Part shown: one piece after another, positions 3,601-41,666 of the stretch
How the letters are laid out: every line of letters begins with the position of its first letter
Position numbering within the stretch: position 1 is the stretch's first letter
Assembly: GCA_904063045.1 (NCBI GenBank)
Contig: CAJFCJ010000026.1
Span: 350,964-414,963, forward strand
From: Dimorphilus gyrociliatus
Lineage: Eukaryota; Animalia; Annelida
DNA length: 64,000 nucleotides
Reading direction: 5' to 3'
Notes under the pieces: model-generated
The model's input: the letters and a program-made list of their open reading frames with translations, nothing else
What the model was told of the DNA's origin: nothing
Databases searched by the model: none
Program-made: the position numbers and the translations under genes

Positions 3601-3639
3601 TGGTTAACCCTAACCCTAACCCTAACTTTAAGTTTTTAT

Positions 3640-4180
3640 ATGTTCCACTTAGAACGAATATTGAGGTTCATTATGACATAGGTAACTCAAAGATTGATTA
3701 TATATACAGAGGAGCCTCTCCATACTCAAACTGAAAAGATCAGCTACTAGTATACCTGCTTCAAAATGCAATAGTGCACATTGTAAATTGCGCCCAACCT
3801 TGTGAAAGGGGGATCTTGGAGCTCCAAAGATGGTCATATCACCAAGAACATTGAGGAACCCCTCTGCTGAAAAACCGATCATGTCTTTTCATTGATGAAT
3901 GTACAAAATGCAACTGGGACCTGTCTAGCTTCACATCTTCACCCTTGTCAAGGATGTTCGGTTTCGTTGCCAAGAAAGCTAGCAGTAACAGAGAGAATGT
4001 TTAGGCTCTGACGGAACATATCAGAAAATGCGGAATCAACACAATAACCGTACTTCCTGTTATGGTTAAACCCCAAATGACCAAAATGGAAGTCAAGAAA
4101 GTGACTACTGTGATCCAATTTTTATATAATTGAGATTGGTTGTGTGTCACAAAGTTTATCTCATCCAATCCTCAGCTAGT
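3640..4180 (+). pseudogene. Unidentified decayed coding-like segment
   Basis: Higher GC than its flanks; one + frame reads protein-like with scattered stops; no motif recognised; bounded by (TAACCC)3 at 3605 and a MITE at 4187. Confidence 0.25.
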
Positions 4181-4186
4181 GTTTTT

Positions 4187-4393
4187 GGATGCTACAGAAA
4201 ACGTCCCCAAGTGCATGGTTTAACCCTAACCCTAACCTACCCCTTGTCTCTCTCTAACCTGTTTGATTACCCCTAACCCTTAGATGGAACCCCCCCTGAC
4301 TACAAATCAAAATCTACTTTACTTCTTTAGCCATTTTTCAATCTGAAATCTTGCTTTCAAAAATCTCACTTGGGGACGTTTTCTGTGGGCCCA
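4187..4393. mobile_element. Telomeric MITE (subfamily 1) with perfect 9-bp TSD
   Basis: TIRs ggatgctacagaaaacgtcccc / ggggacgttttctgtgggccca; TSD agtgttttt at 4178-4186 and 4394-4402. Confidence 0.95.
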
Positions 4394-4539
4394 AGTGTTT
4401 TTATGCTAAATAGTTTTTGTATGGTGATGTGTATGTAAACTTGTGTTTTGTGTTTTTGGATTCTTTGCCCTCACAACACCAGCATTTTGGCGGGTATAAA
4501 CCACTTTATTAACTAATTTTTTAGATCACTCTATAAAAA

Positions 4540-7409: not shown

Positions 7410-7428
7410 TTGAAAAGTACATGATACA

Positions 7429-7490
7429 GGATGCCACAGAAAATGCTGCCAAATGCATGATTTAACCCTAACCCTAACCTAACCTTGTAT
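7429..7490. mobile_element. Half telomeric MITE
   Basis: ggatgccacagaaaatgc...tttaaccctaaccctaacctaacc. Confidence 0.7.
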
Positions 7491-7919: not shown

Positions 7920-8165
7920 CTTTTACAAAATGGAGTACACCAGTTCTATTTGACAGACATAATGACAAAAGTCATCTGATTCAATATTGCTAATTAGAAA
8001 ATGACTAAGAACTACTTCCTCATTATCAATATCCATTGAAGATATTTCAAAATTTTCTTCAAACATATCCTTAGTTTTAGAATGTTCATTACACCTTCTT
8101 AAATATAAACCTGGTAAACATATCCAATGAAGTTTATGCGAACAAAGAAGCCATTTGACTTGCTT
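7920..8165 (-). pseudogene. MULE transposase N-terminal fragment (PHD-like remnant)
   Basis: LCSHKLHWICL...MDIDNEEVV resembles CSLCHHKVHWACL...MDVDHEEVV of the element at 47029-52303. Confidence 0.55.
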
Positions 8166-8372
8166 GGGGTCGACAGAAAACGTCCACAAATGAGAAATTT
8201 CAAGACTAGATTTTGGATTAAGAAATGGTTAGGAAGCAGAAGAGAGCAACTGATTTGTACTTAGGAAGATCTCCTCTAAGGGTTAGGGGTAATGCAAAAG
8301 GTTAGGTACTGCCAAGGGCTGGGTTAGGGTTAGGGTAAAAGCACTCATTTGTGGACGTTTTCTGTCGCATCC
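8166..8372. mobile_element. Telomeric MITE (subfamily 2)
   Basis: TIRs ggggtcgacagaaaacgtccacaaatga / tcatttgtggacgttttctgtcgcatcc; degenerate TSD gacttgctt / gccttgctg (7/9); G4 motif GGGCTGGGTTAGGGTTAGGG at 8316-8335. Confidence 0.92.
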
Positions 8373-8522
8373 GCCTTGCTGTTTTTTGCTAATTTTCTTA
8401 CAACACCCATAACAGAGACTGACATTTTCATCAGATTCTTTCCTATAGTGTCTTTTGGGTGAAAAAATTTTAAAGCTATTTAAAAATAAGCAACAATTGT
8501 ATTTGCAGATAATATGACGGTA

Positions 8523-8592
8523 ATTGAAAAAGGTTAGGCTAGATATGGGTTAGGGTAAAACCATAGATTTATGGCCGTTTTCTACCACATCC
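8523..8592. mobile_element. Half telomeric MITE (subfamily 3)
   Basis: aaggttagg..gggttagggtaaaa..tttatggccgttttctaccacatcc matches the right end of 22139-22345. Confidence 0.75.
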
Positions 8593-8599
8593 AAAACAT

Positions 8600-10470
8600 A
8601 CTAGTATACATTTTTTAGAATGTTTTGTTTGAAAAGAAAAGAATAGATATTTTTTTTAAATATGATATGTTCGGGAAAAGGGAACCACTTCAAGGTTTTC
8701 GACCCTCACCTTCAATACTCCTCTCTCAATTTTTAAAATTTGTTAACTTTCACCTTTAACGTCTCTTTTTTTTATCAGTTTTTGATTTTTTTTTTGACTC
8801 TTCGCCTTCAATACCGCTTCTCATTTTATGTTTTAACGGAAAAGGGTACTAGAATATATTTTAAAAGTTTTATTATGGAGAGACTGGAACCACGCTAAAA
8901 TATTTTTTAACTGATAAGAAAGAAAATGCTAACATACAATTTAACCTTTAACAAGTATATTTGGCAAGGGACAGGAGCCACACTGAAATACATTTTAAAA
9001 GTGATACCACTAAGCAAAAATCCTAGTATATATTATATTTTACTGTATTTGTACACAACATTATTTAAGAATAGTTTTAAAATTTGTTTTTTGAGAAGAA
9101 CAGGAACCTCACTAAAATACTTTTTAAATGTTTATGATTTCTCGACCTTCACCTTCAATACCTCCTGTATTTTTAACATATATCCACCTTCATAACTGCC
9201 ACCATTTTTATAATCTCTCAAGTTTCACCTCGTGTATCCTCTCTCCAATTTTATAATTTATCAGAGACACCGTCACCTTCAAATGAAAAATACTAGCAAA
9301 AATTTAAAAATGTGTTTTTGAGGGGATAGGAACCACATTAAAATACATTTTAAATATGTTTTTAGTAGGTAAAAACATTTTTTAAAAATAGTTTTTTAGA
9401 GGGAAAGAATAATATATGTCTAGATCTAGGTAGAATATTTTGCCTATTGACATGAAAAGGAAGTGGAGACAGATTTTCTGATAGCAGCTTTTGGAGAATT
9501 AATGCAATGTTTCTCATCAAACAGTTGCTGAGAGAATGTTTGTAACTGTTTTAAAGAGGTTTCTTTTAATTCTAGAACTCTAAAATTTTTATGCCATTGC
9601 TAATGTGCGAAGTGCCCACTTCCAATGAAATCATTGCTTCATATCTGCAGGCCATCATTACATGAAGGGTCTTGTTTCATGGTGTCTATCCTCTCAAAAA
9701 ATCGTTATGAGATCAGGAAGACTTGTGTAGCTGGACAATCTAAATTTTATTTTATTTTGTTCAGGTAAGAGACCACTCTAGAAGACATTTTTCAATGTGT
9801 TGCTTCAGATTGTTATAATACAAATTTTTTTTAAGGAACCGTAACCATATTTCATAAAATATTTTGTTTGAATGAAACACTCTTGAGCACATTTTAAAAT
9901 TTATTGCTTTTGAAATTATTTCAACACAGAGAGTGAAAGAAATTTGCTTGACTTTTCCAAAAAATTTTCGTATGAAAAATTTCTTTCACCAATGTATTAA
10001 CAATTTATTGTATTTTTCGGGGGGGAGGACGGAAACCACACTAAAATATATTTACTGTTTTTTAAAATGAGTTATTTGGAGGAGGAACAAGGACCACACT
10101 GGAATACACTCTAAAAAGAAATTTTCTGTTTCGACAGGAACCATGTTAAAAAAATTTTGGTAACTGTTTTGGAAAAATCGTCGTATGCAATTTTAAAATG
10201 ATTTTTGTGTTTGAAATCGGAATCACTATTATATATTTTAAATCAGTAAATGTTCAGAAAAAAGCATTAACTTACATTTTGAGTGATAAAGGTGAAGGTC
10301 GAAAATTTTCACAAGTGACAGTACTTTCAATATCTTTAGGTAAACTTGTTTTTGAAGTAACTGAAACGGAACGGGAACAATATTAGAATACATTTTATAG
10401 TCTTTTGTTTTAAAAAAAAAAACTTTTTTTCAGAGAGATGTTGGAACCATACTAAAATACTTTTTAAATG
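8600..10470 (+). repeat. GGAACCACACTA minisatellite array with GACCTTCACCTTCAA motifs
   Basis: Units at ~8682, 8886, 8974, 9103, 9329, 10033, 10090, 10136, 10443. Confidence 0.75.
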
Positions 10471-10572
10471 TTTTGTGGTCAAAGTAAAAAATACTAGCAG
10501 ATTATTTTCTATATTCTATTAATGGCGACCGGTTGAAAAAGACAGCGAATAATTATTATACATGTATTTTAA

Positions 10573-10682
10573 GGATGCTGGACAAAATATCCCTTATTTT
10601 GAATTTTTATCCTAACCCTAACCCTAACCCTAACCCTAACTACACTAAATTTTACTCTCAAGTGACGTTTTGTCTCGACCAC
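10573..10682. mobile_element. Possible ~110-bp mini-MITE with (TAACCC)4
   Basis: ggatgctggacaaaatatccc ... gacgttttgtctcgaccac resemble the family TIRs; no clean TSD. Confidence 0.45.
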
Positions 10683-11309
10683 ATTGTATTTATCATAAAT
10701 ACAATTTCAAAATTTGTTTAACTCGTTATTTCAAGTACACTTGGTAATATTAAAATGTCTATAAAGTTTGACTCCTTTGTACAATTCTTAAAAGTAAATC
10801 ACCTAATGGAGAAGTTAGGATCAACTGCAAACAACCCCCACTAGAACACGCCTTCAAATCCTTCAACATTGGACACTAGTTTGGTAACTTGGCAATTACC
10901 ATTTGTACCAGTTTTTATAGTTAAAATCCCTTTTTTCATTGAATCTTTTTGAGACTTCTAACATCATTGACCTAAGCCAACATTGATTATCTATATCAGG
11001 GCAAAATAAGGCACTAATGAATATCAACTAAATACTACTCATCTGAAAATTTATATTACATAAAAAGAAATTATAGAACTCTTTACTTAGTTTCATTTCT
11101 AGTCAGTGATATTGTCATAGATGAGTAATTCTTTCTTTCTTTGTCTTTCTTTCTCCTTATATAGGTATAACATTGGGATTGTTAAATACTGTGCACACCT
11201 TCAGTAAACAATACAAATTCAATGTAAAAATAAAAAAGTTATATTAAGAAAATATTTGGTATCAAATATACATCAGATACGGTTCAAAAAGTACGGGATA
11301 CTATAGGTG

Positions 11310-11680
11310 ATAAAACTGCAATTTGTCTGGAAATGAGGGCTTCAAAACATTCAATAGAATTTCCTTGTTGGCATATATTGCGTCTATTGTGCATAAAGGA
11401 TTTTTCTAGAGACAATTGTCAATTTCCTTGTTTAGTTTGTAGACAAACATGTGAAATTCAAAATGAAAGCATTCGTTCTTATCAAAAGAAAAGGTTTAGG
11501 TTAGGGTTAGGGTTAGGGTAGAAAGAAAATAATAAAAAACATATGAGAGATAAATTAGGGTTAGATAATACAGAAGAATTTGATTTGATGTATAAATCTC
11601 ATTTGCATATTTACAAAGATTGTATACAAAATTAGAAAATGAAAAATGCAGATGATGCTTTAAAATCTATATGCAGAGCG
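11310..11680 (+). pseudogene. Decayed RING-finger (C3HC4-like) gene fragment interrupted by telomeric tracts
   Basis: TAICLEM...FPCWHILRLLCI...FPCLVCRQ; two ligand cysteines appear lost. Confidence 0.55.
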
Positions 11681-11935
11681 CTTAACCCTAACCCTAACCC
11701 TAACTCTAACCCTTTTTCAATCATTGAATCGTTTAAAATCAATTACTTTTTGTAATTTATAGGCTGAACAATGCGAATATATTTAATAATATTCTACAAA
11801 ACTCTTCAAAACATTCTCAATACTTAAATTAACAAGATAATCAATTTTCTTATCAAGTTGGAAAACCAATATTTCAAAATATAATTGAAAATTGTACGCA
11901 AATGAATCTCTGACACCATGAATTTCGATACGTCG

Positions 11936-12148
11936 TGTTGAATAAAGCAGGATAAGCTTTATTTTAATAGTCACCATTTATCGCAATGTTAACTTGGTGA
12001 AGACAATTCAGCTACTGGTCATCTGTTATGGAATTAAGAGCCACCTAGTGAGAGTGTTTAGGCCGTTTTAGAATACTGCAAAGCCCCCTGTTGGCTATCA
12101 GTACTATTGGACAACGTTTTCGTTATCCCTTTCATAAATTATTTAACA
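11936..12148 (-). mobile_element. BEL/Pao 3' LTR (213 bp, TG...CA)
   Basis: Preceded on the sense strand by PPT ggcggggag (12149-12157); similar to LTR 20408-20647. Confidence 0.9.
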
Positions 12149-14335
12149 CTCCCCGCCAAGAGGATGACAAAGTAACTGAATCCTCATTAAAAGGAGGATT
12201 TAATACTTCTTGTCCTGGGTCTTTCATAATGGCCGTCAGTGGTTTTGTAGAAATTGCATCTTCCGTGACAGCAAGTAGACTCCTCCAAACCTCATCTCTA
12301 AAATGATATGGAGCTCTGGGGCTTATGAAGCTCCACTTTCCATTAAATTTATTTGACACTTGGGTGAACGTTGCCGCATTATCTGACCTGATATTTATTA
12401 TAGGGCCTTTTAAATACCTCATTTTTAACAGAGCTAACTGAACGCTATCCTTACTCAAAGATTCAATTAGCTCCAAGGTAACGGCTTTTGTTTTCAAACA
12501 AATTCCTATGAGAACGTTCCTTTTTTCGCATTTTTAATTAAAAACGGTCCAAAAACATCTATTCCCCATCGATTCAAATGGAATAGGTTCTTCTATGATT
12601 TGATCCCTACAGGGCTGATTTGCGTTGTACTGGAATTTTCTGTTTTTTCTCCATTCTTCACACTCCTGACACTGGCCATAAACTTCATTCGCTAGAGCTA
12701 CCTCCGCAATTGTCCAAAATCGACGTCGCAATCTATGACGCTTGGCGTTAGGTCCAGAGTGACCAGTCCTCAAGTGAACGTACCTCAGTAATAATTTCGC
12801 CGCACTCATACTCTTATGAAGTAGTACTCTTGTTTCCTTGTTTCTTAGAACAACTTCCCATTGTCCCAATTAATTTCTGGACGTTTTTAACTTTTCCCTT
12901 GCCACAAGAGGTATAAGTTTCTGCTCTTCTGTGATTTTTCCGTTTATTACTAAGGTAAATTTAATTGGATTACCGGCTACTTCCTTCTTAAAATCCTCCT
13001 ATTGATCCCAAGGCAAGGATACCTTCCCCAAGAGGACTCTTTTCGTATTCTTATTTTCCATTATATTTTTTCAGCTCAAACCAATTTTCCTTTAATGATA
13101 AATCTTTTAACTTAGTTAATTGATCTGCAGGATTGTTATCTGTGGATACGTATTCCCATTGATGGTTGTCCGTGTGATTGAGAATTTTCTTTACTCTTTC
13201 TCTCTCGAAACGTACTAAAGGGATTGACATATTTTTAACCCTAACCCTAACCCTAAGCGTCCACATATACTCTGTAGGCAGAAGGGTTTCCTATATAATA
13301 TATTCCTATATATTGACTCCGTGATGAGGAATATAATTTACTATTGTAATATCTTTTGGTTAGGGAATTGCGATTTTCTCATTTAAGTATTCATTCATAA
13401 ATTCTCTCATCATATTCCTTTTCCAAGTCCGGATTTTTCTTAAAAGCTTTAAGTTGCTGTAACAGACGGTTTTCAGCCGTTTTCCGCGGGCAGAATTCTT
13501 TGAGGGTTCCGTTAGTAACCTCATTTATCAATAGCGGTGCTACGATTTTCTCATCCTCAATTATAGTTTTGTTTTCAAATCTTTTCGAGAGTATTTCGTC
13601 TTCTATGGATATTTTCATTTCCTTACTTTTGGGATTTTTAATTGCCATATTGCAATTAACATTTAGTTTGGCGTTTTTCTTGCCACCATAGCAAAACCAA
13701 CCCAGTTTATTTCTGATCAATGTCATTCCATTATGCAAGTTTTTTGAGTCTGTAGGATGCAATAACGAATAATAATCGTTACCTATTACCAATCCCACTC
13801 TCTTATTTTGAAGCTGAGGGATTTTGATGCCTCCGTCCTTAAATTCTTGTTCATCCACCATTTGCCTCGATCTGACAGCCATTTAGGTTCAATTTATACA
13901 AATTCGCAGTATGACGAATTACCCCAAGTCCATTTATAATCAGATCTGTCTGTCCGATAGATTTTACTTTCCACTTCCTCATTAAATCTTACCTTTGTTA
14001 TTATTTCACATTTGATTTAATTTTTCTGTCCAGTAAGTCTAACCTTTCTTCCAAACTATAAAGTTTTTGATCTAATAGTTCTGTGACTTGTTACAGAATG
14101 AATTTTCTTTAAATAACCTTTTATATCGCTCCTCTAGACGCAATATTTTGCCTTTAAATAGCATTATTAATTGTTCCTCCAAATGGATTAATTCTTCCTG
14201 TCGAGATGATTCTTCTTCTCGTACTGATTCATTTACGATAGGCAGGATTATCTTTTTAACCTTTGCGACTATTTTGTTTTCAAACTGATAACTATTATGA
14301 TGGAGGGCCGATAATCTATTAATTATTTGAAGCCA
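12149..14335 (-). mobile_element. BEL/Pao internal region, copy a (heavily deleted gag/PR/RT/RH/IN)
   Basis: IRSDNAATF, HxxxGHSG..FW..CxxC, WEYVSTDNNPAD, NYIPHHGV, VGLVIGND motifs; most of RT deleted at 13236. Confidence 0.9.
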
Positions 14336-17300
14336 ATCTTTTTCCAGTTATCTCTGGCTTTCTTACAGTTTTGCCAGTTTGCCATCAAGTCTCTATAATA
14401 CTTAATAAGAGTTTTTGGGCTTAGAACTTCTTGATCTGGGTCTTTCATAAGTGCCGGTAAGAGGTTTTGTGGAGACCGCTTCCTCAGCAACTGTGAGTAG
14501 ACTTCTCCAAATTTCGTCTTTAAAACAGTTCTTTAAATAAGGACGTAATATCCATTTCACTGTTCTGATTGATTGTTCCCACAAGCCTCCTTGATATGGA
14601 GCTCTAGGACTTAAAAACTTCCAATTCCCATTAAAATTCTTTGTAGCTTGGGCAAAGGTTGCTGCATTGTCTGATCTAATATTTGTTATAGGACCTCTTA
14701 AATATCTCATTCTTAATAGAGCTAGCTGAACACTGTTCTTGTTAAGAGATTCCATTAGTTCCAATGCAACAGCTTTTGTTTTCAAACACACTCCTATAAG
14801 GACATTCCTTTTATCACCATTTTTATTCGTGAATGGTCCAAAAACGTCTATTCCGATTGATTCAAAGGGAATCGGTTCACCAGTAATTTGATCCCTATAA
14901 GGTTGATTTCCATCATATTGAAACTTCTTGTTTTTCCTCCACTCTTCACATTCGTGACACTGATCGTAAACTTCGTTCGCTAACGTTACTTCTCCAATTG
15001 TCCAAAACAAACGCCTCAATCTATGACGCATGGCGTTAGGTCCAGAATGACCTGTTCTCAAATGCACATATCTCATGAGTACTTTCGCTGCACTCATGTT
15101 TTTATGCAGTAAAGTTCTTGTTTGTTTATTTCTTAGGACGACCTCCAATTGACCCAATTCATTTCTGGTCAATTTTAATTTTTCCATTGCTGGGGGAGGT
15201 ATAACTTTCTGTTTAATTGCGATTTTTTCGTTAATTAAATAGATAAATTTATTCGGATCACCCGCTACTTTTCTTTTAAAATCCTTCTCTTGCTCCCAAG
15301 GCTTTTCCCCAAGAGAACTTTTTGAACATTTTTTCTTTCCGTGGTATTTTCCAACTTAAACCAATTTTCCTTTAGGGAAAAATCTTTTAATTTTGTTAAT
15401 TTATCGGCTGGATTGTTCTCAGTGGGTACGTATTCCCATTGATAGTCATCTGTGTGATTAAGAATTTTCTTAACTCTTTCTCTCTCAAAACGTACTAAAG
15501 GGATCGATATGTTTTTGATATATGCCAGGACTGCTTTATTATCGGACAAGAATGTTGTTGTTTTCTTTTCCAATTTATAGGATTCAAACTCTAATGCTAG
15601 TTCAACACCTAATAAGGCCGCCATCAATTCTCTCCTCGGAGTCGACGATTTATTATCGGGATCGCCTTCCTTATTAAGGCGTGATTTCACTCCAATAATA
15701 TGCCAAGTTTTGTCTATAAAACCGTAAATAACTGCTCCATGACGATCCTTAGACGCATCTACCTATACCCGGTAAGCTGACGGGTTTCCAATATATCAAG
15801 GTAACTGAATTCTTTCGAGCAACTTTTTCGTTAGCATTTTCCATTCGTTTACGAATGGATCCGGGACTTTTGCATTCCAATTACTTGACTCCATATGACA
15901 ACATGCCTTTGACCATATAGTCTTAAACTCGGCTCTAATTGGCTCTATATAGTCAAGTGGGTCGAAAACTCTCATTAAAGCTGAATTCATTTCTCGATAT
16001 GACGGTTTCCAATTGCCACTCTAAGTAATCGTCCTTTGTATACTTGATTCCTAATATTCTTTCTGCCGTTGATTGATCTTCTCCAAATTTGGCAGCTAAT
16101 TCTGTTACATTAGAATCAAATTTAGTCAATTTAAAATAGGGCTTTAATGTCTCTTGCAAGTTTTTAGCCATTTGTTCTCATTCATCCAAATCATCACTTG
16201 ATTGCACCCAATTGTCGATATAGAAACTATTAGTAATTATTTCTTTCCATTCATGGTATAACTTTTCAGATTCTTCTATCAATTTTTGTAAGGATCTACA
16301 TGCTACGAAAGGAGAACCTTTTAAACCAAAGGTGTGTCTTGTTAAGACAAACTCCTTTATGTTTTCTTTGGTTTTATTAACTCCTTTTTCCCAATATAAA
16401 AATCCGCAATACTTATAATGCGACTTCAATAAATGGATTTGGTGAAACATTGCCTTTATGTCTGCAACAATGAGGTACCTTTTGAGACGAACCTTTATCA
16501 ATATTTTTCTAATGTTGTTGCTATTTTTTCGTTTAAATATTCATAAATTCTCTCATCATATTTCTTTTCCAAATCCGGATTATTCTTAAAAGCTTTAAGC
16601 TGCTGTAACAAACGGTTTTCTGCTGTTTTCCGCGGGCAGAATTCTTTGAGTGTTCCGTTAGTAACTTCATTTATTAGTAAAGGTGCTACAATTTTCTCAT
16701 CTTCAATTATAGTTTCCCTTTCAAACTTTTTTGAGAGTATTTCATCCTCTATTGATATTTTCGTTTCTTTACTTTTTGGGTTTTTAATTCAATATTGCAA
16801 TTAACTCGAATTTTAGTATCCTTTCTACTACTGTAACAAAACCAACCTAATTTGTTTTTGACCAAAGTCATTCCATTACCCAAGTTTTTAGAATCTGTGG
16901 GATGTAGTAACGAATAATAATCATTGCCCACTACCAATCCCACTCTTTTATTTTGAAGCTGGGGGATTTCGATGCTTCCAGACTTAAATTTTTGTTGATC
17001 CACTTTTGGCAAATGTTTAACACCATATGCCTCTATCTGGCATCAGTTTAAATTCAACCTATAGAAATTTGCAGTATGTCGAATTACCCCAAGTCCGTTT
17101 ATAACCAGATCTGTCTGTCCGATAGGTTTTACTTGCCACTTCTTCATCAAGTCTTCCCTTACTAGCGTAATGTCTGATCCAGTATCTCCTATTGCAACCA
17201 AATTTTGTCGTTTAGCATTAACCTTAATTTCGACTATATTTGCTGTTTTTGCTTTATTTTCTACAACTAGCAATGCATTTTCAATCTTTCTACAATTATG

Positions 17301-22345: not shown

Positions 22346-22583
22346 CATTGCAATTGATGATTAGTTTAGCATTTTTTTCTGCCACCATAACAAAACCAGC
22401 CCAATTTGTTTCTAATCAATGTCATTCCATTATCTAAGCTTTTTGAGTCTGTGGGGTGCAATAAAGAGTAATAATCGTTACCCACTACCAATCCCACTCT
22501 CTTATTCTGCAGGTGAGGGATTTTAATACTTCCATCAGTTTACAAAAAAATTCTTTCTATGAATACATTGACCTGTCAAAATG

Positions 22584-24044: not shown

Positions 24045-24223
24045 TAACCCTAACCCTAACCCTAACCCAGCCCTTAGCTGTACCTAACCTTTTGCATTAC
24101 CCCTAACCCTTAGAGGAGACCCTCCTAAGTACAAATCAGTTGCTGTTTTCTTCTGCCTAACCATTTCTCAATCCAAAAACTTGTCTTGAAATTTCTGATT
24201 TGTGGACGTTTTCTGTCGACCCC
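24045..24223. mobile_element. Telomeric MITE truncated at its (TAACCC)4 tract
   Basis: Body and right TIR gtggacgttttctgtcgacccc match 2765-2972; left TIR absent. Confidence 0.88.
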
Positions 24224-24659
24224 ATTGAAAATTGTACTCAAATAACAGTATTATGTTTATCCAAATGTCATTTCGTTAAAGCAATTGGCAGTGTAAATTG
24301 GTAAGGCAATTTGTTGTAATCTAAATTCTAAAGTTGGAAAATCAATATTTCGAAATATTACAGAAAATTGTACTAAATTAACAGACCTACGTTTATCCAG
24401 TTGTTGTTTCAATTAATATATTGACAGTTTTTTTACTAAAGCAATTGGTTGTAATCAACAACTTAGCATTTTAAATTTGCAAGAAAATAGACTAGCATTT
24501 TTGAAAATCTTGTCCATATTTACTATAATAGAGGTCGACTAATAAATCCGGACATAAAGGATATTACTTTAAACTTGGATATATACAGTCCCAATAAAAA
24601 ATCTTGGGCAGATATTTATAAAACTGAATTTAAAGATAACATTCATTTCAACATTTTTT

Positions 24660-25830: not shown

Positions 25831-28800
25831 TGAGAAAAAGCTTTCTTTTCAAGAGAAATGATTTTTAAATACCAAACCCAATGAAGAAAAACATTAAAAA
25901 ATATGTAACTATCTTTATAGTGTGATATAGTAGTTTTTTTCAAAATACATCAAAAAGTACTTTTCTCTCACTTAACCCTAACCCTAATTTAATTTCAAAT
26001 TGTTTTCCAAAGAATGCTCTTTTTTTTCTAGTATGTTTCTATTTGCAGGAAAAAATTGAATTTTGTTTAAAAAAATATCAAGCATGGAGCAAAAGTTCTG
26101 AAAAAAAATTTTTGTTTCTAACTAAAAAATACAATTGAGTTTTTTAAAAAATGGAACCATACTAAATCGGATTTGGTAAGAGGTGCTAATTTTCGACACG
26201 AATGTAGCATATTGAAGGTTTGTTTGTCAAGCAGGTACAACTTCTGAACAAGAAACATCAACTGTTGAGCAACATCATATGTCATTTTTCTTCTTTTTAT
26301 CTTTTTATCTGATATCAAAGAGGGAAAGTGTACAAGAAAATGTTTGATTCAGCTAAAGAGAATTTCTAAGATTTATAAAAATAATCTTTTTGACAAGGCA
26401 ACAACCTAACCTTGAATGAGAACAAATCATTGATATTAATAATGAAAATGGTGAAAAAAAATAAAACTAGTGCGCATACATCAAAGTTGGTAATTGACAC
26501 AGATAATGACGAATTCAAACTGATAATCAGAATAATCAGAGAGAGAATTATTGCAGAGATTGTTCTAAACATAGAAAACTAAAGGAAAAATTTAAACACT
26601 GCTTTCATTCTATATGATTTCCTGCAAAGAGTTAAGTATTATAGGGAAACAACACACATTTATAATTATTCCCTGTAATCAATCACCAACATGAGGAATT
26701 TACCATTTTCAGTTGTAAAAAAGTATTTTAAACAATTGTATTACATTTAAAATATATATGATATCAAAAAAATCATTTTTAATGGAACACGAACCACACT
26801 AAAACATTGTTAATAAAGAACGGAAACCACACTAATTTAACAAAAACTTGATTATAATAAAATAGTAATAAAAAGTAAAACAATTGGTTTTAAAATGTTA
26901 ATAGTGTGGTTCTTGTCCCTAGAGATTTTTCAAATTTTTTTTAAAGGGAGAACCATACTTTAGTTTTTATATAGTACAAAAATATTTGTACAGAAAAAGT
27001 TTCATTACAAATGAACTAAATCCTATTTTTATTCTCTTCCTATTGAAAATAATGGCAATATTGTTTATAATTTTTGTTTTTTAAAAATAATTTTTAATGT
27101 GGTTCCCGTTGCACTTGCTCTATTGAAAAATTTCTATAGTTTAACACTGACCTTGACCTATTTTTATTTTTTAAATTTGAAAACTACATACTCCATTCTC
27201 TTGTTTATCTTGTTGAAAAAAAATGTGATACAAACAATACTATATTCTGATGCTCATTTTGGAATTTAAACAGGCAACCAAAAAAAAAACACATCATGTT
27301 TATAAATACTTAAAAACTTTTCATAAATTTATAAGATGCTCATTGGGTTTTATGCTTTTATTGTTATGGCTAAAATCCGTTGACAAGTGGAACAAAGGTA
27401 ACATTATACAGACATACCAACCAACATAAATAATGATGCGGATAGGGAACCCTACACCATTACTATAGTTTATTTGAAACAAAATTTTTTGAAAAATGCA
27501 AAAAAATTAGCACACTTTAAAACAACAGACTATTCTATTTTTGTATATTTTTACTGTGTTAGTCTGGTAACCTGTTCGTAATAAGTCATGTTATAACAAA
27601 ATTGTTACAAAATGGGTTTTAAAGACATTAGCATGGTTACTATTTCCAATAATATTATTTTAAAATTGTTAGCAATATTAACTAATAATATTAACATTAT
27701 AAGGAGAATGTTTTCTAAATAATTGGCGCCACCTATTGGTGAAATATTTTTAATTTGTGATTAACATAATATTTAGCCTTAACAGGCTTGACTTTGTGTT
27801 TTTAAAATTGAAAACATCTTTAAGAGTAGTTTAGAAAAGACTGGTGCCACTTCAATAAAATATTTTTTTCCTTAGCATTCTTAATTAGGTTATCTCTTTT
27901 AATTTTTTTAGACTAATTAGCAAACAGAATAACAAAGTTTATCTTTTCAAATTTTGTCTAGTGTGGTTCCCCACTCCAAAAATAAAAACAAATAGAATTT
28001 AAGCGAAAAAGATTATGTTGTAAACTAATCTGTTACTTTTTTTTTCTACCAGTTATATCATGTATAGAAAAATTACTAATAGGGGAAAATGAAACAGGAT
28101 CCACTTTAAAATGAGGAAACTTTTCGACAAGTGGTTTAGTAAATGAAATCCATAAAAATAAAAATTTCATAGCGATGAAACAATAAATTTCAAAAATGAA
28201 TTTCACCTTTATTTATCTTTGAGATTTTAAAAACTTGATCTTCAACTCTGGATTCTAAAATACTGTTTTCCCTATAATGTATGTTTGAAAAAAATTTCAT
28301 CTTTCATTAAATTAAGCAAGTAAAAATGGGGAAAGGTTTCTCAATGTTGTTAAAAAGTGGCACAACATTTTAGGAGGGTGTGGACGCCTCGAACCAGTCT
28401 AAATAATATTAGAGAAACTCTTTTTGATTAGGATGTGTAGATTTTTAGATTTTTTGAGTCAAGTTGGAATTTTTACATTGTTTTTAAATACCTGCCAGAA
28501 ATTTTCCCTCCTCCATTTTTGCAAAAATTTGTCAATAAAAACTACTGGAAAGTAAAGAAATATTTAAATGAATTTTATCTTTAAGTTCAGTTGTGTAAAT
28601 GTCTTATCCTTCATTCTAAACAAAAAAAATAATTAAGTATGTTCTTTTAGGTGAATGTTTCACTTTTTCCATTTTAAGGACAACTCTGTCCAAGAATTTT
28701 TATTGGGACTGTCTGTATGTGAGTTTCTTTCAAATATCATTTAGATAAGTTTTTTACATAAGTGTTTTTGTTTTCTTATTATTCATTTTTTGATGATTTT

Positions 28801-28859
28801 TTTCTTATATGGCCATGAGACATTATTAATTGGACAATGGTTTGGGGATTAATATTATT

Positions 28860-29835
28860 ATTATTTTTGAATATGACAACCCTCATTTTCTATTCATTTG
28901 CTAATCCTACCCGCCATCACTGCTTATAAATTTTGTAGCAAATCAGGATTTTGACTTATAACCTGGTATGAACATTTTTTTATTTTCTCCTACAGTTCAT
29001 TCCCAAATTGAAATTGTGCTCCATCATATACTAGATTTTTTGTCAGGTGCCAAATATTTTCTATAGGGCTATGGTCAGGGCTAGAAATCAATTGGGTCTA
29101 TACCATTCTTTCTAAAGGCCCTCCTAGTAGCTCTTGCTGTGCGGCAATGTTAGGGTTAGGGTTAGGGTTAACCTAACATTTATTTTTCTCACCATCTTTG
29201 GTGTCATCAGGCCCCCACTCAGAGAGAATCTGGCCTTGTCTGAAAATCACGCTCGAGCAGCAATTGTTTTAAGGCAGTATTGTTTTCTTCTTGGGCAATC
29301 ATTATTTGTAAGATCAACTCTTTGTCTTATCCTTTTTACTTATAATTTTGTTTTGTCAGCTCTCTCTGAATGGTTATGAGGCTCACATCTACCTCTAATT
29401 CTGTTAAGACCTTTCTTGCTGTCACCCTTTCGTTATTTTGAGGAATGTTTCTTTACAATTCTTTTCATCCTTACTATGTCTCTTTCTGTGAGTGTCTTTG
29501 TACGACGAAGATCACTTAATGTAGATGGTGCCATTCCCAAAGCCATAGCTGTTTTCCTAAATTCCTTATATTTCCTAACTACCGGACTAACCTCTTTATC
29601 CCAATCCATAATTCAGTAAATAGACTGAAAGTTAACTACTGTAATTAAAATAGACTTAACTTTGAAAATTAGTTTTGTTGAACAAAATTTCTGTATTATG
29701 TCAATTTGAATGCAAAACCGGAAATGAAATGGATGTACGGGTAATAATGTCTCATGGTCAAATTTAGAAAAAATTAATTAAAATTGGCCATTCAAAATTT
29801 ACACTGTCCGGGTTCTTTAGTCCACCACTATATAT
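28860..29835 (-). pseudogene. Tc1 transposase pseudogene, central DDE region deleted, 5' TIR near 29830
   Basis: N-terminal HTH (TARKVLTELEVDVSLITIQREL), FSDKARFSL, then (C)RTARAT and SPDHSPIENIWH. Confidence 0.85.
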
Positions 29836-31720: not shown

Positions 31721-33449
31721 TTGATTTGAATATTTTTTTGAAACTTGTTATTTCTTTATGTCATAATTTTTTATGATCCTTCCTGAGCATCCTCACTATC
31801 TTCAAACAAAGTGGTCATCTTCAGTTAACAAAAATAAGAGAATTTTCCAGAAGAGTAATTTTTAACCCTAACCCTAACCTTACTCAACAATAATTTTATT
31901 AGATGAGTGATAATTAAAGTCACCTCAAAAATTCGACAAGATGTCTTAATAATGACATAAGTGTGGTGGAAGAGGTAACCCGTCTAACAAAAAAAACTGT
32001 TAATCAACAAAGAGTGTTTTTACATAGGTGGCGACATAGTATTGTACATGGAGGGCGCTGCCTATATATTGTGGGTATACAAGACAAATTTTTCCATTAA
32101 GCTTTGTGAGGAAGATCAGCTAAGACTGAAATATCTTAACCGGAAAAAACGTTTATTCTAAAAGAAATCTTTAATAGCTTTATAAACGATTTCGTAATGT
32201 ACGGTTTTTTTGTGAGGGAACAGGATCCACACTATATATTTATATCAGAAAAAAGGGGACAAATTGATATGGTGAACAGTAACCATATTATGGTATTATT
32301 CAAATAATTAACTAGGCCTAGTTACTAGAATATGACAAAAAACAGTTATTATATATAATGGAATAAAAATTGTCACACAAAGTTGTAAAATGTATTTGAA
32401 TAATTTATTCATAAATCATTTTATCATTTTGACAGAAATTAGATTTAGATGATACTAGCAATGGCGACAATAATAGGTTTTTAGTAGATTTCGTGGAATA
32501 CAGCTCTTTAGCTAAGTATTTACAGACAAACTTTCACTTAATGTAGTGTTTATCTTAATGAAGTTTCATAAATAATTCGGAAAGGTTTTATAATCTATAG
32601 TTTAATCTTGTTCTATATTTTTATACCAGTTTACATTGACAAAAATAAAAAATTGAGAACCAGTCTATTTGAAAAATATATATACAAATGGGTTTTCTTT
32701 CCTACACTGTAAATGTAAGGGAGAGCTGGAAACCAGTCTACTTAAAATAAATATATTACCCCTAACCCAACCTAATGTTTTCTTCACATTTTGCGAAGAG
32801 ACATAACAATCTGGACAATGGAATAAAATCAGGTTGAAAGACAAAACTATTACAGTGGCGATATTAAGTCTCTGGCAGTGTTATTCTTAGAATAAAAAAA
32901 AATTTCAATTTTTAATTTAATAATCTATTGGATATCCTTTTCTTTGGATCATAAGGCAACTTTTTTAAGTTTTAAGGATTTGTAGAGACATTTTTTATAT
33001 AATCCAGAAAAATAACCCAAAGGATTTCAAAAATATACAGGTCTGCATTTTGGATAGGCCAATATTTATATATTTACTTAGAAACAATGTTTTATCTCGG
33101 ATTAGAGATGAAATAGCTAATTCATCCAAAAAATATTGGTCTTAAGCTCATCATCAGTTTAACATTTTTGTTTTTTTTACTTTTTGGTTGGGATAGAAAC
33201 CACACTAAAATAAATTGTAATTGTTCAGTTTAGTCAAAAATACTAACATACATTTTGAAATATTTTTTCGGAAAAGGACAAGAACCACACTAGAATATTT
33301 TTGATAAAAATCCTCTTCTCAATTTTTGTTGTTGTTAAAACAATACAATTTACATTTTCAATATGTTGTCCTTGGTGGGGGAGAGGAACCACACTAACAT
33401 ACAAGTAAAATGTGTTTTATTTAGGAAAGGAACAGCTCTAGAGCACAAT

Positions 33450-33850: not shown

Positions 33851-34019
33851 GGATCTTTTTTTAAGGGGACGGGTACCCTTTTAGAATACATTTCATGAAA
33901 TCTCATGTTTTGAAGGCACCAAATGATATATTAGCTGGCCAATACTTTTCCCATAAAATTATTTACATAATTTTTTTTCTTCATTTTTTAATAATTTCAA
34001 AAAAAATACATAATTCTCC

Positions 34020-34430
34020 ATAATCCTCATGAATATTCATAATATAGAATCATTGAGAAAATGTTCATTAAATAGAGAAACTATACAAAAATAATGGAAA
34101 AATTTGGATTTTTAATAGTAAATATGCATAATGGGAGTTAGGAATTATGGAAACATTTTGAAATTTTAGATGGGAATCAATTTCTTGGATCCTCTTTATA
34201 TTTCAGGGAAAGTGAACATTGTCAAAGTGTTATATATTCTTTCAGAATATTTTGCAGTTTGAATATCATTTCATCCTTATTAATATTCATAATCTTAGTG
34301 ATATCTCAACAATATCTTTAAACTAGTTGTTCATGTTAAAAAAAAAAGAGAGAAAAGTATTTTAAGCCATTCTAATCAAAATTTAACTTCCCAGCCTGTT
34401 CTCATTAATATTCATAATTATAACAAAAAG
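34020..34430. repeat. ATGAATATTCAT minisatellite (also ~36600-36750, 38240-38640, 39840-39900)
   Basis: Repeated aatattcataa units. Confidence 0.6.
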
Positions 34431-34477: not shown

Positions 34478-36535
34478 GAATTATGGAGAAAACGTCCACT
34501 ATGTTAAGAATATATTAAAAAATACTTTTTCAAATTTAAATTTTTATTATTGATTTTGAGATATATCCAATACATTCCCATAATGCAATCACTTTTGGTA
34601 GCCATTTTGAAATCCAGACAGGAAACAGTTCTGGGATCTTCTATGTTTTTCATGGAAAGTGAATATTGTGCATATTTCATCTACAATTTTTCAGAATTTT
34701 TTGCAGTTTGAAATATATTTCACTATTGAAAACCATCAGACAAAACACAAACTTTAGAATTGATATCAGTAAGTTATAGAATATTGTGTTGAAATGATTT
34801 ATTTATAAATTAGCTTTATTTTTATAGCAGCCATTTTGTTTATCATTATTGTTAATTGTTTAATTTTTAAATTTACACAGTTGGTTATTGATAGAGATTC
34901 CAAATTGAACATGGCACCAATTTGTTACATTTGTGAAGAGAGAATATATGGAAGACAAAATCAAGAGAAATGTCAGCTTTGCTGTCATTTATTTAAAATA
35001 CATAAAAAATGTTTGGATTATAAAGGTTTGTTTAAGTTTTTTGTCACTATCCTTCCTTACAAATATGTTTTTATATTTTTTCACAGATCAATCATTTTAT
35101 TGTAACATTTGCTGTGACATATCAATGAAGAAATGCATTGTTGCACTTCAAAGGCTACCTTCTAGTGCATCTGCTAATGAAGAAATAAGACAAACACCAA
35201 ATTTTGATACAGCAAATAATAGAAATGAGCAAACTATTGTTTGTGAAAATCATTGTGGAAATTCAAGTGGAAATGATACAAATGGCAGTATTATGGAATC
35301 ACACAATGTTTTAGTTGAAGATCTTCCAGCTCAGTATTCAGTTCAACTTGGCTAAAACTTTTATTCCTGATGATTTTTTACAAATGGATATACAAATGGA
35401 GAATGATAGAATACTAATATTTTCAACTACAAAGCAAATTGAATTATTATCTAAAGGCAAAATATGGTTTATGGATGGCACATTTAAATGTGTGAAAGAC
35501 CCTTTTTATCAACTTTTTTCTATTCATGGATTTATAAAAAAAAATGGAGAAATAAAACAAATTCCAATGGCTTTTGCTTTTAAATTGAATAATCTAATTT
35601 GTTAAATTAACAGGCAATACAAGATTTAACAAATGGGCATAGCCCCAAAAAAGTTGTTGTAGACTTTGAAAAAGCTATTTGGAAAGCACTATCATTCACT
35701 TATCCTGAAGCAAACATTAAAGGGTGTGTTTTTCACTGGACACAGAAAGATTCAAGTAATACTTTAATTTAGTATTTGAGGTCTAGATAGAACTGACATA
35801 TTTATTTCCAGGAATTAGGATTATGTAAGATGTACAAGGAGAAAAAAGCTGAATATAGAATCATGAAGAAATTAATGGCATTACCATTCCTGCCCTCTGA
35901 TCTGATAGAACCAACATTTAAGACTATTAAAGAAATAAGTCCTATTGAAATGAAGTCTCCATTGGAGTACATTGAGACACAATGGATAAATGGATTTTAT
36001 AAACCAGAGGTATGGTCTGTTTATGGTGAGGCTATAAGGACAAATAATGATCTTGAAGGATGGCATCACAGGCTTAACAAGAATCTTTGCTCTAACACTG
36101 CATTCTATTTGCTTTTAGATGAACTGAAAAGAGAAGCTGATCTGATAAAGCTATATAAAAAATTACTGAGTGAAAAGAAAATTTGTAGACAGCAAAGAAA
36201 AGCATATGAGAATATTCAGAGGAAAATATTCAGCTTATGGGAACAATTTGAAATTGCCTCAATTACCTCCCTGGACTTACTTGATAAAGCTTCTGACATT
36301 TATTCACCAGTTTAAAATACCTTTATTCTTTAATGTTGTTACACTGTTGTCAATCATTCTTGTTATATTGCTTCTTTTTACTTAATCAATATATTAATAT
36401 TTAAATATTTGTAATTCTTATTATTCATTTTTTCCTGTCAAATTGCTCTAAAAACTCCATCTATCAAATATCTTATATCTTACTTTGAAGTTTTATAATG
36501 GACGTTTTCTCCAGTGGACGTTTTCTCCTGTACCC
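34478..36535 (+). mobile_element. MULE with PHD-like N-terminus, FLYWCH deleted, perfect 9-bp TSD
   Basis: Termini gaattatggagaaaacgtccac / gtggacgttttctcctgtaccc; TSD aaaagttac at 34469-34477 and 36536-36544; MAPICYICEE..CQLC..HKKC..CNIC, WFMDGTFK, VDFE, CVFHW, RTNNDLEGWH. Confidence 0.93.
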
Positions 36536-37659
36536 AAAAGTTACCTTTAGACCATAATATTGAATAAAAAAAATTCTAGCTGATTCTCATGAAAATTTCT
36601 AAACCTTAACTTTTTTACATGACTATTTATAATCTTAGATGCATATCATGAATATTCATAAACCTAGGTTTTTTCTCATGAATATTGATAATCCTAGCTG
36701 ATTCTCATGAATATTCATAAACATATACTTTTTCCTAATCTATTCACATGAATATTTATATGAACAACATGCTTCATCAAAAAAATTCAGTAAAGTTATG
36801 TTAACTCTAACCATAACACTAACATATATGAACAGTTTTTTTAACATATCCAGAAGTGAAAAAAGCCATACAAGAATACACTTTATGAAACAGATGGTTA
36901 TTACCGCACAGAGAGTGTATGGGAGAGCTGGATACCAGTCCACTTAAAAAATTCTTACACACCTTTCAAATATTTTAACAATAATCAACTTAGAACCAGT
37001 TTAATTGTACAACATATGCAAAAATGTAATATGAATACCCTCAATTCATTTTTGGAAGATAGGATCCACACTTTTTAAATATTTAGTGTCATGAACCGCA
37101 CTAAATTCTTTATAAACATTTTTTTTTCAGGGAATAGGAACCTCACTAAAACACTTTAAACTATTTTGTGTTTTTCAAGGGTTATGAACCACACAAATTT
37201 TTTAAATAAATATTTCATCTTTCTATGGAACAGGAACCAGGCTGGAAATTTAAAAAAATATTTTGTTGCTAAGCAAAAATAACGGCGCAAAATTTTTGTA
37301 GTTTTAGGGTGAGGAATAGGAACCATATTAAGATACCTCTTAAATATGTTTTTTTCCTGAAGATAGAATCCATACTAAAGCACGTTGTAAACGATTTTTC
37401 CTTTTTAAATTAAATTTTATAAAAACAATTGATTTTGTTTTCAATAGAAATAACATTACAAAATAATTTTTACCCGTTTTGTTTAGAATGTAGCTGGTTC
37501 AAGTTGGTGGGAATTATGGAATAAGAACCACTTTAGGACAGAAGTCTAAAGTGACTTTTTCAGGCTCATTTTCTTAATAGTCTGCAGAAAATTATTTAAA
37601 AGTTAACAAACTAAAAATATAATTAGTTGTTAACATTTACTTTAAATGCCAATTTTTAA

Positions 37660-38200
37660 GCTCTCTTGTATTTTGATGTCATGAAAATGAAGGCCAGGGG
37701 CACATGTTTCATGTTGCCATTCTTTTTCACATAGGATTGGATTGTCAATAATTGGTAAAATGGTTCTTTTACTATTTTAAATGTTCCATCAACAAACCAA
37801 TGCCCTCATTTTCTCAACAATTTAGGGTTTGGGTTAGGGTTAGGGTTAGGTTTTTTGTTTCAAATATAAGAATCCTTTCATTGTTTTCACAGATGTCTTT
37901 CTTCAGAAAGTTGTCTGGGTTGAAATCCATATTTTATTAAAATTCATAATCTTTTGGTTCCATTGGCCTTTTCTTTTGCTCGGTTGAATTGGCCATCCTT
38001 TTCAAATATTGCATGTTTGGTAGAAAATCACTATTAGTTAGAGTGAAGGAAAATCATCCATCCTTCCAGTCACATTACTCTCTTCTAGATCTTGATCTTG
38101 ATTTTGACTTCTTTCATTATAGTAACTTTCTTCTATATCTTGATGTTCATTTCCATCATTAATGTCACTCTCATCCATATTTATGTATGTTAATTAATTT
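37660..38200 (-). pseudogene. MULE transposase fragment carrying a telomeric insertion
   Basis: NFLKKDICENNERILIF...HWFVDGTFKIVKEPFYQL. Confidence 0.8.
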
Positions 38201-38939
38201 AAAGTGGGTTTGGTTCCACCTGCTCCCATATTAGCTTCTTATCATTAATATTCATTATTTTAATTAGTTAGTAATAGTATCTCTAAACAAGTCAATAGCT
38301 TAGAGTAAGAAAATTTTTAAATTCTTAACAGATTTAATTTTCTGAACCAGTTTAATGAATATTCATAATTCTGATTGATTCTCATCAATATTCATAACCT
38401 TAGAAGATTATCATTTTAAATTTGTTGTCTGATTGCAATCAATACTCAAAACAAGTTTGGCACATTAAAATTAGATTATATTCATTGGTAGTCATAATAT
38501 TTGGAAATTTTCATCAACATCTCCAAAAAATTCTGTCTTACTTTATAATTGGAAACTTAAATCATTCCAAACAAGGTTAATTATTAAAAAATTTTCATGA
38601 ATATTCATATTGTTAGGTTGTTCTCATGAATATTCATTAGGGTTAGTATAACCTAAATTTTTCAACTTTAACCCTGATGATGTTTATTTTTTTAGAAAGA
38701 TTATTAAGTAAACTTAATAGCATGAATCATAAATTGTTTTTTTTTTGGAATGATGGGTTACCAGTCTAAAAATAATTTAAGGAACAACAAGAAAAGAATT
38801 TTAGCAATATTTTAATATTATAAGTGTATAAGATGAATTTTTTCGGGAGAACAGGAACCACATTAATGTAATTTTGCAATGTTGTTTTTAAAAGCTAAAA
38901 AATGTAGGACTACTTCTGATTCTGGATAGATCTTCTTCC

Positions 38940-39670
38940 ACTTGAATGTGTGTCAGTTAGGCACATATCCCTTCAATCTTTCCTGATTGATATATTGAAT
39001 GATAAACTTTGATTTGCTCCATGAATGGGTTTTTTGTCTAGTGAATTTCTTTGTTAATGAATTCTTGTAGGACATCTCTGCTTTTTAGTTCTCTTACTCC
39101 ACACTCAAATACTACTTTTAGAAGTTTTAGCATTGAGTGTGAAGGGAAATCCATTGTGTATCAGAATGTACTTTCCCAGTTGACTTCTAACCCTAATTAT
39201 TTGAAAATCATTATCCATAACTTCTTGGAAAGTGTCAACAGCATTCACTGATATTTCATCATAATTTGCATTCAAATCTCTCAAAACCATCACCTTTTCT
39301 GTTATCCGTTGCCTCTTCATCAATCTTATCATCTCCATTCTCATTCATTGCAACAGTCTCTCTTTCATTCATTGATCTTCTAGTCTAAACCTAACCCTGA
39401 CCCTAACCCTAACCCTAACCCTGATTGAATTCTTACTGATGATAGATTTTTCATAGCACACAGAATTTTCTCTTCTGTCTTCCATAAACTGTAAGTTTAC
39501 AATTTTTGTACTTGATTGCAGATTTTAAAAATGTTTAATTTATTATTTGAAGAAAAGTGGAAAACTTTGAAACAAATATTTGTAATACTATTTCAAGATT
39601 CTCTTATCAAGTAATCAATAAACAAATTCAAAATGGCTGACCTGGAAAAAAAACTGGTACTTGTTCTCAT
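38940..39670 (-). pseudogene. Fragment of the MULE family found at 52736-54716
   Basis: NAVDTFQEVMDNDFQII..SQLGKYILIHNGFPFTL; shared 5' sequence ctcttatcaagtaatcaa..aaaatggctgacc. Confidence 0.85.
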
Positions 39671-41666
39671 TAATACTCATAATTCTATTTAGTTTTATGA
39701 TTTTACACCTGACCCTTGATAATGTTAGACCAATTGATTTGTGATTATATAATTTTAATAGGTCAGAATGTGTTAGGGTTAGGGTAAAATCGCAAAAAAC
39801 CCTAAATTAATATTAATACTCACGAAACCAGTTTTCGTATCATTAATATTCATGATATTGATTATCCTCATAAATATTCATGATTCGGATAGTACTCACA
39901 AACTGTTTTAAAATGAGAACAAGCGGACGATATCGTCAAATAGGCTCTGGCATCCATCAGAGTACAACCTTCTTATAAGGTTATCTGATGTATTATTTTG
40001 TCTATATTCTATATGCCCTGTTATCTGATGACTGAGGAATTTGCTAAAATCCAAAATACGAATATTTATAGACGTACGTCGACGATCATTTTGGCAATTT
40101 TTAACCAATCCTTAAATGGGTTTATATTTGCCTTATTTTAAACACTAAAATTGCTCTTTGTTCAACCCAAAAAAACTTTGGTTTGTTTAATGCAAATCAG
40201 TTGAAAGATTTTCAAAAGTTATTGCCTTTTGTCAGACTTTATTGACAAACAAAATATGCACATATACACACACACACACACACTACACATACGAATAATT
40301 TTGTCATTTCATCCTTTTGTCTTATTCTCGTCAATTGGATATAGTATATAAAGAAAGGTTCACTAAATAAGACACAATTTTTTTTTTACATGATTAATGA
40401 TGACGTCGGCAAACAATAATTATCATCATTTTCATCATCAAACTGTTTGTTTGTAAGAAGAAAAAGCACTTGAATCTTTTTCAATTTCCGAATCAATTGC
40501 TTTTGCTTGTTCCTCTTCTTCCAATCTCTCTTCTTCATTGTAAAAAAATACAACAAATATTTTACGATGACAAATGTTAACAAAATTCTTTTGGAGAATG
40601 AAAAATTAATTGTTTGGCAGTTTGTACAAACAATCTCTTTTCTTCGGTCAGTTCGATATTTAGTTTTTTTTTTTCAAGAAAATATTGTAATAATCTGAAT
40701 TTTTTACATTGTTATCATCATTCCTTTTCAATGTTAAAAATTGTCTTTCAGAAAGTTTGTCCGTTAGAGACGGAATGAAACGAATTTGCTCTACGCTTCG
40801 GAGGCTGCCTCAAAAATGGCTTGTTCCGTCGGTCAACCTCCGTCTTATATACGTTACTCAATCAGGGAATTTTTTTCGTATTCACCTCATTTTCGTATAA
40901 TATTGTAATTTCTTTGATGAATTATTTGAACTTGAGGAAAAAAAAGACATAGAATTATTGCCCAGTCTTTTCTATTTATCGAATTTAAAATTAAGGTCAT
41001 TAAGATTTTGGCACAACGCAATAAAAAAAGGGAGGAGGGAAGGAATGGTTAGTAGGTAAAAGCAAGAGAGTTAGGGGTTAAAAGGAAAAGGATTAAAAGG
41101 TTAGATAAAGCCAAAGAGGGTTAGGGGAAAAAGGGGAAAAAAAAAAAGAAAACATTTTTTTTAAGTTTGTTTTTTTTTAATCCTATTTTTTTTTTATTCA
41201 TCTCTTTTTCAATTTTGATATCAAAATTCCTAAGAGAAGGAAGATTTTCTTTTTATCAATAAAAGTGGTTCTACGTTACTTTGAAGCATAAACTCATTGA
41301 AAAATTGCGTCAGCATTCAATTTTTTTTTTGAATCGATCATCTCGTTAATAGAGAAACAATTTAGTTCATACCAACAACGACAAAAATGATAATATGTTG
41401 TTTGGTAGGTCTTTGTAACTTGCTGGAATAAACTTAGCAAAATAATAGCATAGTTTTATATCGTTAAGATAATCCAAGATTTATCGTAAGAATAATCTTC
41501 GGGGGTGCGTATGTTGGGAATAGATTTGTCCAGGGAGGGGAGGAATAGTGAAGTTGAGAATGGGTATGGTTGAATAGTAAATCAGAAAGAAACTTGAAAA
41601 AGTTTCTATTGTAGAAAGCCACTTGGGCTCTCATGAATAAGTGACGAGCTCCCGCTGCGTTGCCAG

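Follow-up and report, generated by a model that had tools for sequence, protein, structure and literature searches.

Short tracts of the telomeric repeat TTAGGG are scattered through a 64,000-nucleotide stretch of the genome of the annelid Dimorphilus gyrociliatus (assembly GCA_904063045.1, contig CAJFCJ010000026.1, positions 350,964 to 414,963 of the forward strand; hereafter, the window, to which all coordinates refer). These tracts are real but mixed in origin, with at least two sources. We consider it probable that they comprise motifs carried by two transposon families, a miniature inverted-repeat transposable element (MITE) and a family denoted S, together with five insertions made during the repair of breaks or gaps inside transposons, telomerase being the most likely enzyme.

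The window is AT-rich (about 30% G+C) and packed with transposon pieces. The 12-mer (TTAGGG)2 occurs 28 times on both strands, compared with none in 100 shuffles, and the tracts of at least two perfect units merge into 19 loci, all within positions 1656-39785. A mismatch-tolerant scan added only three decayed tracts (at 2341, 21675 and 36802), the longest tract is 38 bp, and both orientations are represented; the window has no long array in one orientation of the kind that a terminal or decayed subtelomeric array would form. By class, there are eight MITE loci, two family S loci, five junction tracts and five tracts in none of these classes (10611, 11499, 11683, 25973 and 31863), so that at least 10 of the 19 loci are carried by transposon families.

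A preliminary description made from the sequence alone had listed 12 tracts outside MITEs, and telomere-type repeats are indeed found at all 12 places. Its estimate of roughly one tract per 2 kb holds over 1-40 kb, as does its remark that tandem units disappear after about 39.8 kb: none of at least two perfect units lies past 39785 in the rest of the window. Two of the 12, at 3605 and 39773, belong to family S, and the supposed (TTAGGG)2-5 tract at 21675 is a degenerate one of 16 bp. The division into MITE-borne tracts and repair scars was too simple because it missed the second carrier family. The features are collected in Table 1.

Table 1. Telomere-type tracts in the window and the elements that carry or adjoin them
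Feature	Position	Strand	Evidence and remarks
Pol junction tract	13236-13256	- (G strand on minus)	Replaces 238 bp of RNase H core; missing part is copy 2 15517-15754
Single GGTTAGGG unit	13358-13365	+	Second deletion junction of pol copy 1; ~720 bp including reverse transcriptase missing
Pol junction tract, degenerate, 16 bp	21676-21691	-	Replaces 484 bp of third pol copy; missing part is copy 2 15677-16160
Tc1 junction tract	29149-29177	+	22-bp G tract followed directly by one C-type unit, head to head, GGGTTAACC
MULE transposase-domain tract	37822-37850	+	Net gain 20 bp, ~12 bp replaced; paralogs continuous
MULE tract plus filler	39385-39517	-	38-bp tract and ~95 bp filler replace 3 bp (TGT)
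MITE, full copy	1494-1712	+	Internal tract 1656-1672; alignment; nhmmer E 1e-56 to 1e-66 across full copies
MITE, full copy	2760-2982	-	Alignment, nhmmer
MITE, full copy	4184-4395	-	Alignment, nhmmer
MITE, full copy	8162-8376	+	Alignment, nhmmer
MITE, full copy	22136-22350	+	Alignment, nhmmer
MITE, full copy	22578-22796	+	Alignment, nhmmer
MITE cut at its own tract	24045-24228	-	nhmmer, profile positions 4-177 only
MITE right-end piece starting at tract	7428-7488	-	nhmmer; flank score 47, shuffles 25 +/- 3
MITE right-end pieces, similar	2327-2378 and 8523-8593		nhmmer
Family S copy	3548-3660	+	Last CATGAATATTCA-type subterminal repeat, decayed G unit, perfect C-strand tract 3605-3626
Family S copy	36706-36840	+	Degenerate tract 36802-36824, position as in other S copies
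Family S copy, inserted in MULE	38596-38700	+	G unit 38637-38646, decayed C tract after it
Family S copy, inverted	39745-39850	-	Tract 39772-39785, 2.3 units
Inverted pair of ~5-unit tracts	11489-11715	.	Arms 11489-11519 and 11685-11715, 31 nt; 165 bp between
Five-unit tract	10611-10640	-	nhmmer E 3.9e-5 to MITE with tract included; flank alone not significant
2.5-unit tract	25973-25987	-	Non-coding AT-rich DNA
2.8-unit tract	31863-31879	-	Non-coding AT-rich DNA

Junction tracts inside transposon genes

Five tracts behave like repair scars in that they are absent from paralogous transposon copies and lie at junctions of insertions and deletions. Paralogs without the tract are available for the sites at 13236, 21675, 37822 and 39385, and for the Tc1 site at 29149 the comparison is by protein reading only. 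The anatomy of the junctions, observed directly like the absence from paralogs, is that of end joining: 238, 484 and about 270 bp were lost at the first three sites along the window, about 12 bp were replaced at the fourth, and 3 bp were replaced, with about 95 bp of filler, at the fifth. The preliminary description placed such tracts exactly at breakpoints in three unrelated classes of transposable elements. The five junctions do fall in pol, Tc1 and Mutator-like element (MULE) genes; the exactness is in part circular, as an inserted tract interrupts homology in any case, and a crude test of the proximity of high-scoring segment pair ends to tracts yielded a weak and likewise partly circular P of ~0.05.

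Two of the junctions reside in the pol gene of a long terminal repeat (LTR) retroelement. Copy 1 (12.3-14.0 kb) matches copy 2 up to 13236 (equivalent to 15516), where 20-21 bp of repeats follow, and positions 13257-13297 past the tract match copy 2 again at 15755-15795. The translation retains ...VDA and KNMSIPLV... on the two sides, and 79 residues of the RNase H core are gone; the tract had initially been described as standing in place of most of the reverse transcriptase, which is not what was lost here. Pfam domains on the minus strand comprise the integrase zinc domain (12534-12869 and 14402-15187) and, in copy 2, RVT_1 (16178-16501). The 111 bp after 13256 were considered as foreign filler, an assignment that was dropped given that the first 41 bp are the resumed pol sequence. 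The second deletion junction of copy 1 contains about 60 bp of partly duplicated filler and, at the edge of the junction, the single GGTTAGGG. The retained pol piece is flanked by C repeats to the left and by a G unit to the right, an arrangement that extension of both its 3' ends would produce. The loss in copy 3, which additionally has a plain 600-bp deletion, overlaps that in copy 1; either copy retains sequence missing from the other, and the events are therefore independent. An LTR-retroelement open reading frame (ORF) of 542 residues at 17043-18671 on the minus strand has no Pfam match and none at E 1e-10 in a large protein search.

A Tc1 transposase gene on the minus strand has lost about 90 internal residues, and the tract at 29149 occupies the gap. 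The coding sequence can be followed through the helix-turn-helix region into the beginning of the catalytic domain, as far as 29172, and picks up again beyond the tract with SPD..PIEN; on the left side, there is a weak Pfam match to DDE_3 (positions 116-145, the last 30; E 0.028). The placement of this tract at a breakpoint agrees with the protein read on both sides; the undamaged Tc1 homolog that the initial claim implied is lacking in the window. The interval 25973-29170 was also evaluated as a piggyBac-type element with a TTAA target and CCCTAA ends, and rejected, given that Tc1 coding continues directly left of 29149.

The remaining two junctions are in a MULE copy at 37.6-39.7 kb, which was compared with paralogs at 52.7-53.9 and 56.2-57.6 kb that run uninterrupted through both sites (the Pfam MULE domain of the paralog lies at 53517-53885). 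Homology resumes after the filler of the second tract, reaching 95% over 39569-39664. The MULE tracts are absent from the paralogs and constitute small insertions in an otherwise continuous element. The filler 39423-39568 was considered as telomerase RNA or a known repeat, without a match in the window or in L001. A piece of the MULE transposase is 87% identical to a D. gyrociliatus protein.

These tracts exist in the DNA of the animal. The stretch 10500-13500 is present in five sequencing runs, and Logan contigs from four of these were aligned to 8000-13900. Contigs of run X1 cross both the tract at 11499 and the junction at 13236 with no differences and no gaps. Run X5, from another study (2017), contributes two contigs, one of 257 bases over 11280-11536 and one of 2134 bases that covers 11988-13900, including the junction, again without differences or gaps in either. 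Contig ends fall at the longest tracts (10598-10648 and 11676-11718), as repeated words would lead one to expect. An assembly or polishing artefact, envisaged in the preliminary description as a possible undoing of its proposal, has a negligible probability, with two separate studies crossing 11499 and 13236 unchanged and no point in its favour found. Over 11996-13900, the depth of the pol copy is ~1.8x (X1) and 2.8x (X5) that of neighbouring single-copy DNA, and the scarred pol copy may be present two or three times in the genome.

Two carrier families and the remaining tracts

The first carrier is a Mutator-type MITE of 205 bp. It contains GGTTAGGGTTAGGGT some 35 bp inside the right end, and its inverted ends have a GAAAACGTCC motif in common with the subterminal repeats of the MULE. 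All six full copies carry the tract at this fixed position. In addition, one copy (24045) is cut at its own tract, which has grown from 2.5 to 4 units and abuts an unrelated repeat also found at 11175-11254, and a further three to four pieces of the right end begin at the tract or close to it. When six independent copies are aligned, uninterrupted identity extends furthest over the two telomere-like motifs (invariant runs of 14 and 12 columns), which are kept better than the terminal inverted repeats, suggesting that these motifs matter to the element; some service to this abundant MITE would be a separate question from that of the scars. A segmental duplication of 848 bp with 98.5% identity (1452-2296 and 22536-23383) includes one MITE copy, so that the tracts at 1656 and 22740 represent one event. 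Another copy lies inside pol copy 3 at 22149-22345, where pol homology overlaps by ~8 bp on the two sides; this overlap would fit a target-site duplication.

The second carrier, family S, has a characteristic order: the last unit of a 29-bp subterminal repeat, one G-type unit, 0-15 bases and a C-type tract. The tract is perfect at 3605, amounts to 2.3 units at 39772, and is decayed in the copies at 36706 and 38596. The tracts at 3605 and 39773 occupy the same position as those of the other copies, four in all, and are accordingly family-borne rather than free-standing. Hence, the MITE loci and the S loci at 3605 and 39772 have a motif whose position is constant among several copies of a family; none of the five junction tracts displays this pattern. 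A 2-kb MULE with GAAAACGTCC ends (34480-36535) has S-type repeats just outside it, at 34002-34052 and 36576-36734, and was apparently inserted into an element of family S.

The tracts outside these families are not eroded MITEs. When 120-bp tract flanks were aligned locally against the six MITE copies and compared with shuffles, every flank remained within the shuffle range except those at 7463 and 24045; in particular, the flanks at 10611, 11499, 11683, 25973 and 31863 resemble the MITE no more than by chance, although the left flank of the 10611 tract is weakly like the MITE right end. The suspicion, voiced at the outset, that all tracts could be traced to eroded MITE copies is thereby removed, with the qualification that it left family S out of account. 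The non-coding sites at 10611, 25973 and 31863 have no paralogs in the window. The tracts at 11489 and 11685 form an inverted pair with the G-strand 3' ends pointing inward, the left arm being spanned by contigs; the pair would fit a break extended on both ends, the alternative being a foldback element. In run X5, at 11517, a contig from another genomic place matches up to the G tract and then continues as TTAAACCCTAAA, another head-to-head G-then-C arrangement.

A probable role of telomerase and the alternatives

The register of the tracts bears on the enzyme involved. At the five junctions, the G strand starts with TTAGGG, GGGTTA, GTTAGG, TTTAGG and AGGGTT, that is, in at least four phases. 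The end is more regular: 7 of the 12 tracts outside full MITEs finish with GGGTTAA, followed by C, G, A, G, G, A or C, and over the whole window the base after GGGTTA is A 15 times, T 3 times and C 4 times, with several of these occurrences in related MITE copies. A 5-base TTAGG unit finishes three junction tracts. Judged by eye, a possible register of the break ends with the repeat spans 0-3 bases in the five events, the paralogs being 12-30% diverged. The variable start combined with the fixed end fits a polymerase that copies a short template with a fixed boundary.

Under the scenario that we favour, a free 3' end at a break or gap in a transposon copy would receive 2-6 telomeric units, most likely by telomerase, and the extended end would then be joined to the other end, with 3-484 bp lost and sometimes extra filler, while the MITE and family S would spread telomere-type motifs of their own by transposition. 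The role of telomerase as the enzyme and the origin of these events at chromosomal breaks are likely but unproven. A more elaborate version, which is tentative and which we would not expect to hold in full, is that a germ-line telomerase of low processivity often extends internal 3' ends (both ends of a break as well as both ends of an excised fragment), that the surviving scars are dead-end GGGTTAA products read just past the template, that joining through the TTAA palindrome yields GGGTTAACC, and that such scars were captured by transposon families, at least by the MITE and S, and conserved there.

Several observations weigh against telomerase-mediated repair. GGGTTAA is likewise the context in which the MITE and S tracts natively end, and copying from these elements could therefore produce an identical end. 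The event at 13236 may have been followed by, or may itself have caused, a duplication or mobilisation of the pol copy that carries the tract. The suggestion in the preliminary description that this genome may heal many breaks in such a way is conjectural: a second, 16.6-kb transposon-bearing locus, the only other one examined, contains one MITE-borne tract and no free tract, and the last 24 kb of the window have no free tracts either. Finally, five tracts fit none of the classes above and may derive from families that are represented only once in the window.

The shared context of these ends leads directly to the possibility, which we deem rather unlikely, that the junction tracts were copied during repair from MITE, S or other interstitial tracts, via template switching, synthesis-dependent strand annealing or templated insertion of the polymerase-theta type. 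Such copying would account for the joint occurrence of MITE-borne and free tracts in 1-40 kb and their joint absence from 40-64 kb, for the start (G)GTTAGGG and the end GGGTTAA common to junction, MITE and S tracts, and for a 25-mer found both in the Tc1 filler and in the S copy at 3605. Nevertheless, no MITE- or S-specific base beyond the repeat is present at any junction, the junction tracts are mostly longer than the would-be donors (16-38 bp, compared with 15-17 bp in the MITE), and the final TTAGG of three of them has no counterpart there in donor tracts. The greater length also argues against a reading that we hold to be quite improbable, namely, that all tracts are transposon-borne and the junction tracts are leftovers of nested tract-bearing insertions after later deletions, a protein-bound or G-quadruplex tract perhaps stopping the degradation. 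Ten loci are already accounted for by the two carrier families, and breaks recur at the MITE tract, where one copy is cut and several right-end pieces start; yet this reading requires two flush deletions per event, five times over, and the 37822 tract is a clean net gain of 20 bp in continuous coding sequence.

A constant boundary on one side of the tract could also be explained if copying stopped at a structured RNA beside the tail of a retroelement. The tracts would then be extreme 5'-truncated, tail-only insertions of elements with a reverse-telomere tail, made at breaks without an endonuclease. This origin is unlikely: no hammerhead was detected in the window at the gathering threshold, nor with the cut-off relaxed to E 1, the scanned ORFs encode no Penelope-type reverse transcriptase or GIY-YIG domain, an element-derived base is never attached to a tract, and the tracts occur in both orientations.

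Comparison with known systems

If telomerase made the junction tracts, a repair route known from mammals would extend to a lophotrochozoan with a very compact genome, and the dead transposon copies would amount to a built-in archive of earlier breaks. The regularity of the GGGTTAA end offers a checkable link between the scars and the RNA template of the enzyme. For a mollusc telomerase reconstituted in vitro, a template of 8 nt and low processivity were reported (PMC8480181); the template of the annelid telomerase RNA is not given in the text of that article. Comparably low processivity would suit tracts of 2-6 units.

The telomere-primed Penelope-like elements Athena and Terminon resemble the present case in that short telomeric repeats border pieces of mobile elements. 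In contrast to those systems, the tracts described here lie inside pol, Tc1 and MULE genes and form no one-directional chain, and neither an Rfam match in the window (two scans) nor a Penelope-type domain in the scanned ORFs was detected. Caenorhabditis elegans, with 1,229 interstitial telomere tracts that are abundant and degenerate (reviewed in PMC9071541), is likewise an invertebrate with a small genome, in which numerous internal tracts cluster in regions rich in repeats, whereas in D. gyrociliatus the tracts are mostly short and perfect, many belong to defined transposon families and some have a resolvable junction.

The closest parallel comes from rodents and primates, in which short telomeric insertions mark sites of double-strand-break repair (Nergadze et al. 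2007, PMC2246262; also PMC7215372, PMC8537989). About half of these insertions are accompanied by flanking deletions and about a sixth by added sequence; for those located within repeats, the consensus of the repeat served as the reference, and microhomology at the break ends pointed to telomerase (PMC2246262). As in the window, the mammalian insertions consist of a few perfect units, are absent from the empty reference, show no change, a deletion or added sequence at the site, and in some cases reside in repetitive elements. The annelid tracts differ in that the reference is a paralogous transposon copy rather than the orthologous locus, in their far higher local density, with five events in 40 kb, and in the recurrent GGGTTAA end and head-to-head GGGTTAACC joints. 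All in all, the five junctions fit the class of scars already published for mammals, the new aspect being the annelid host.

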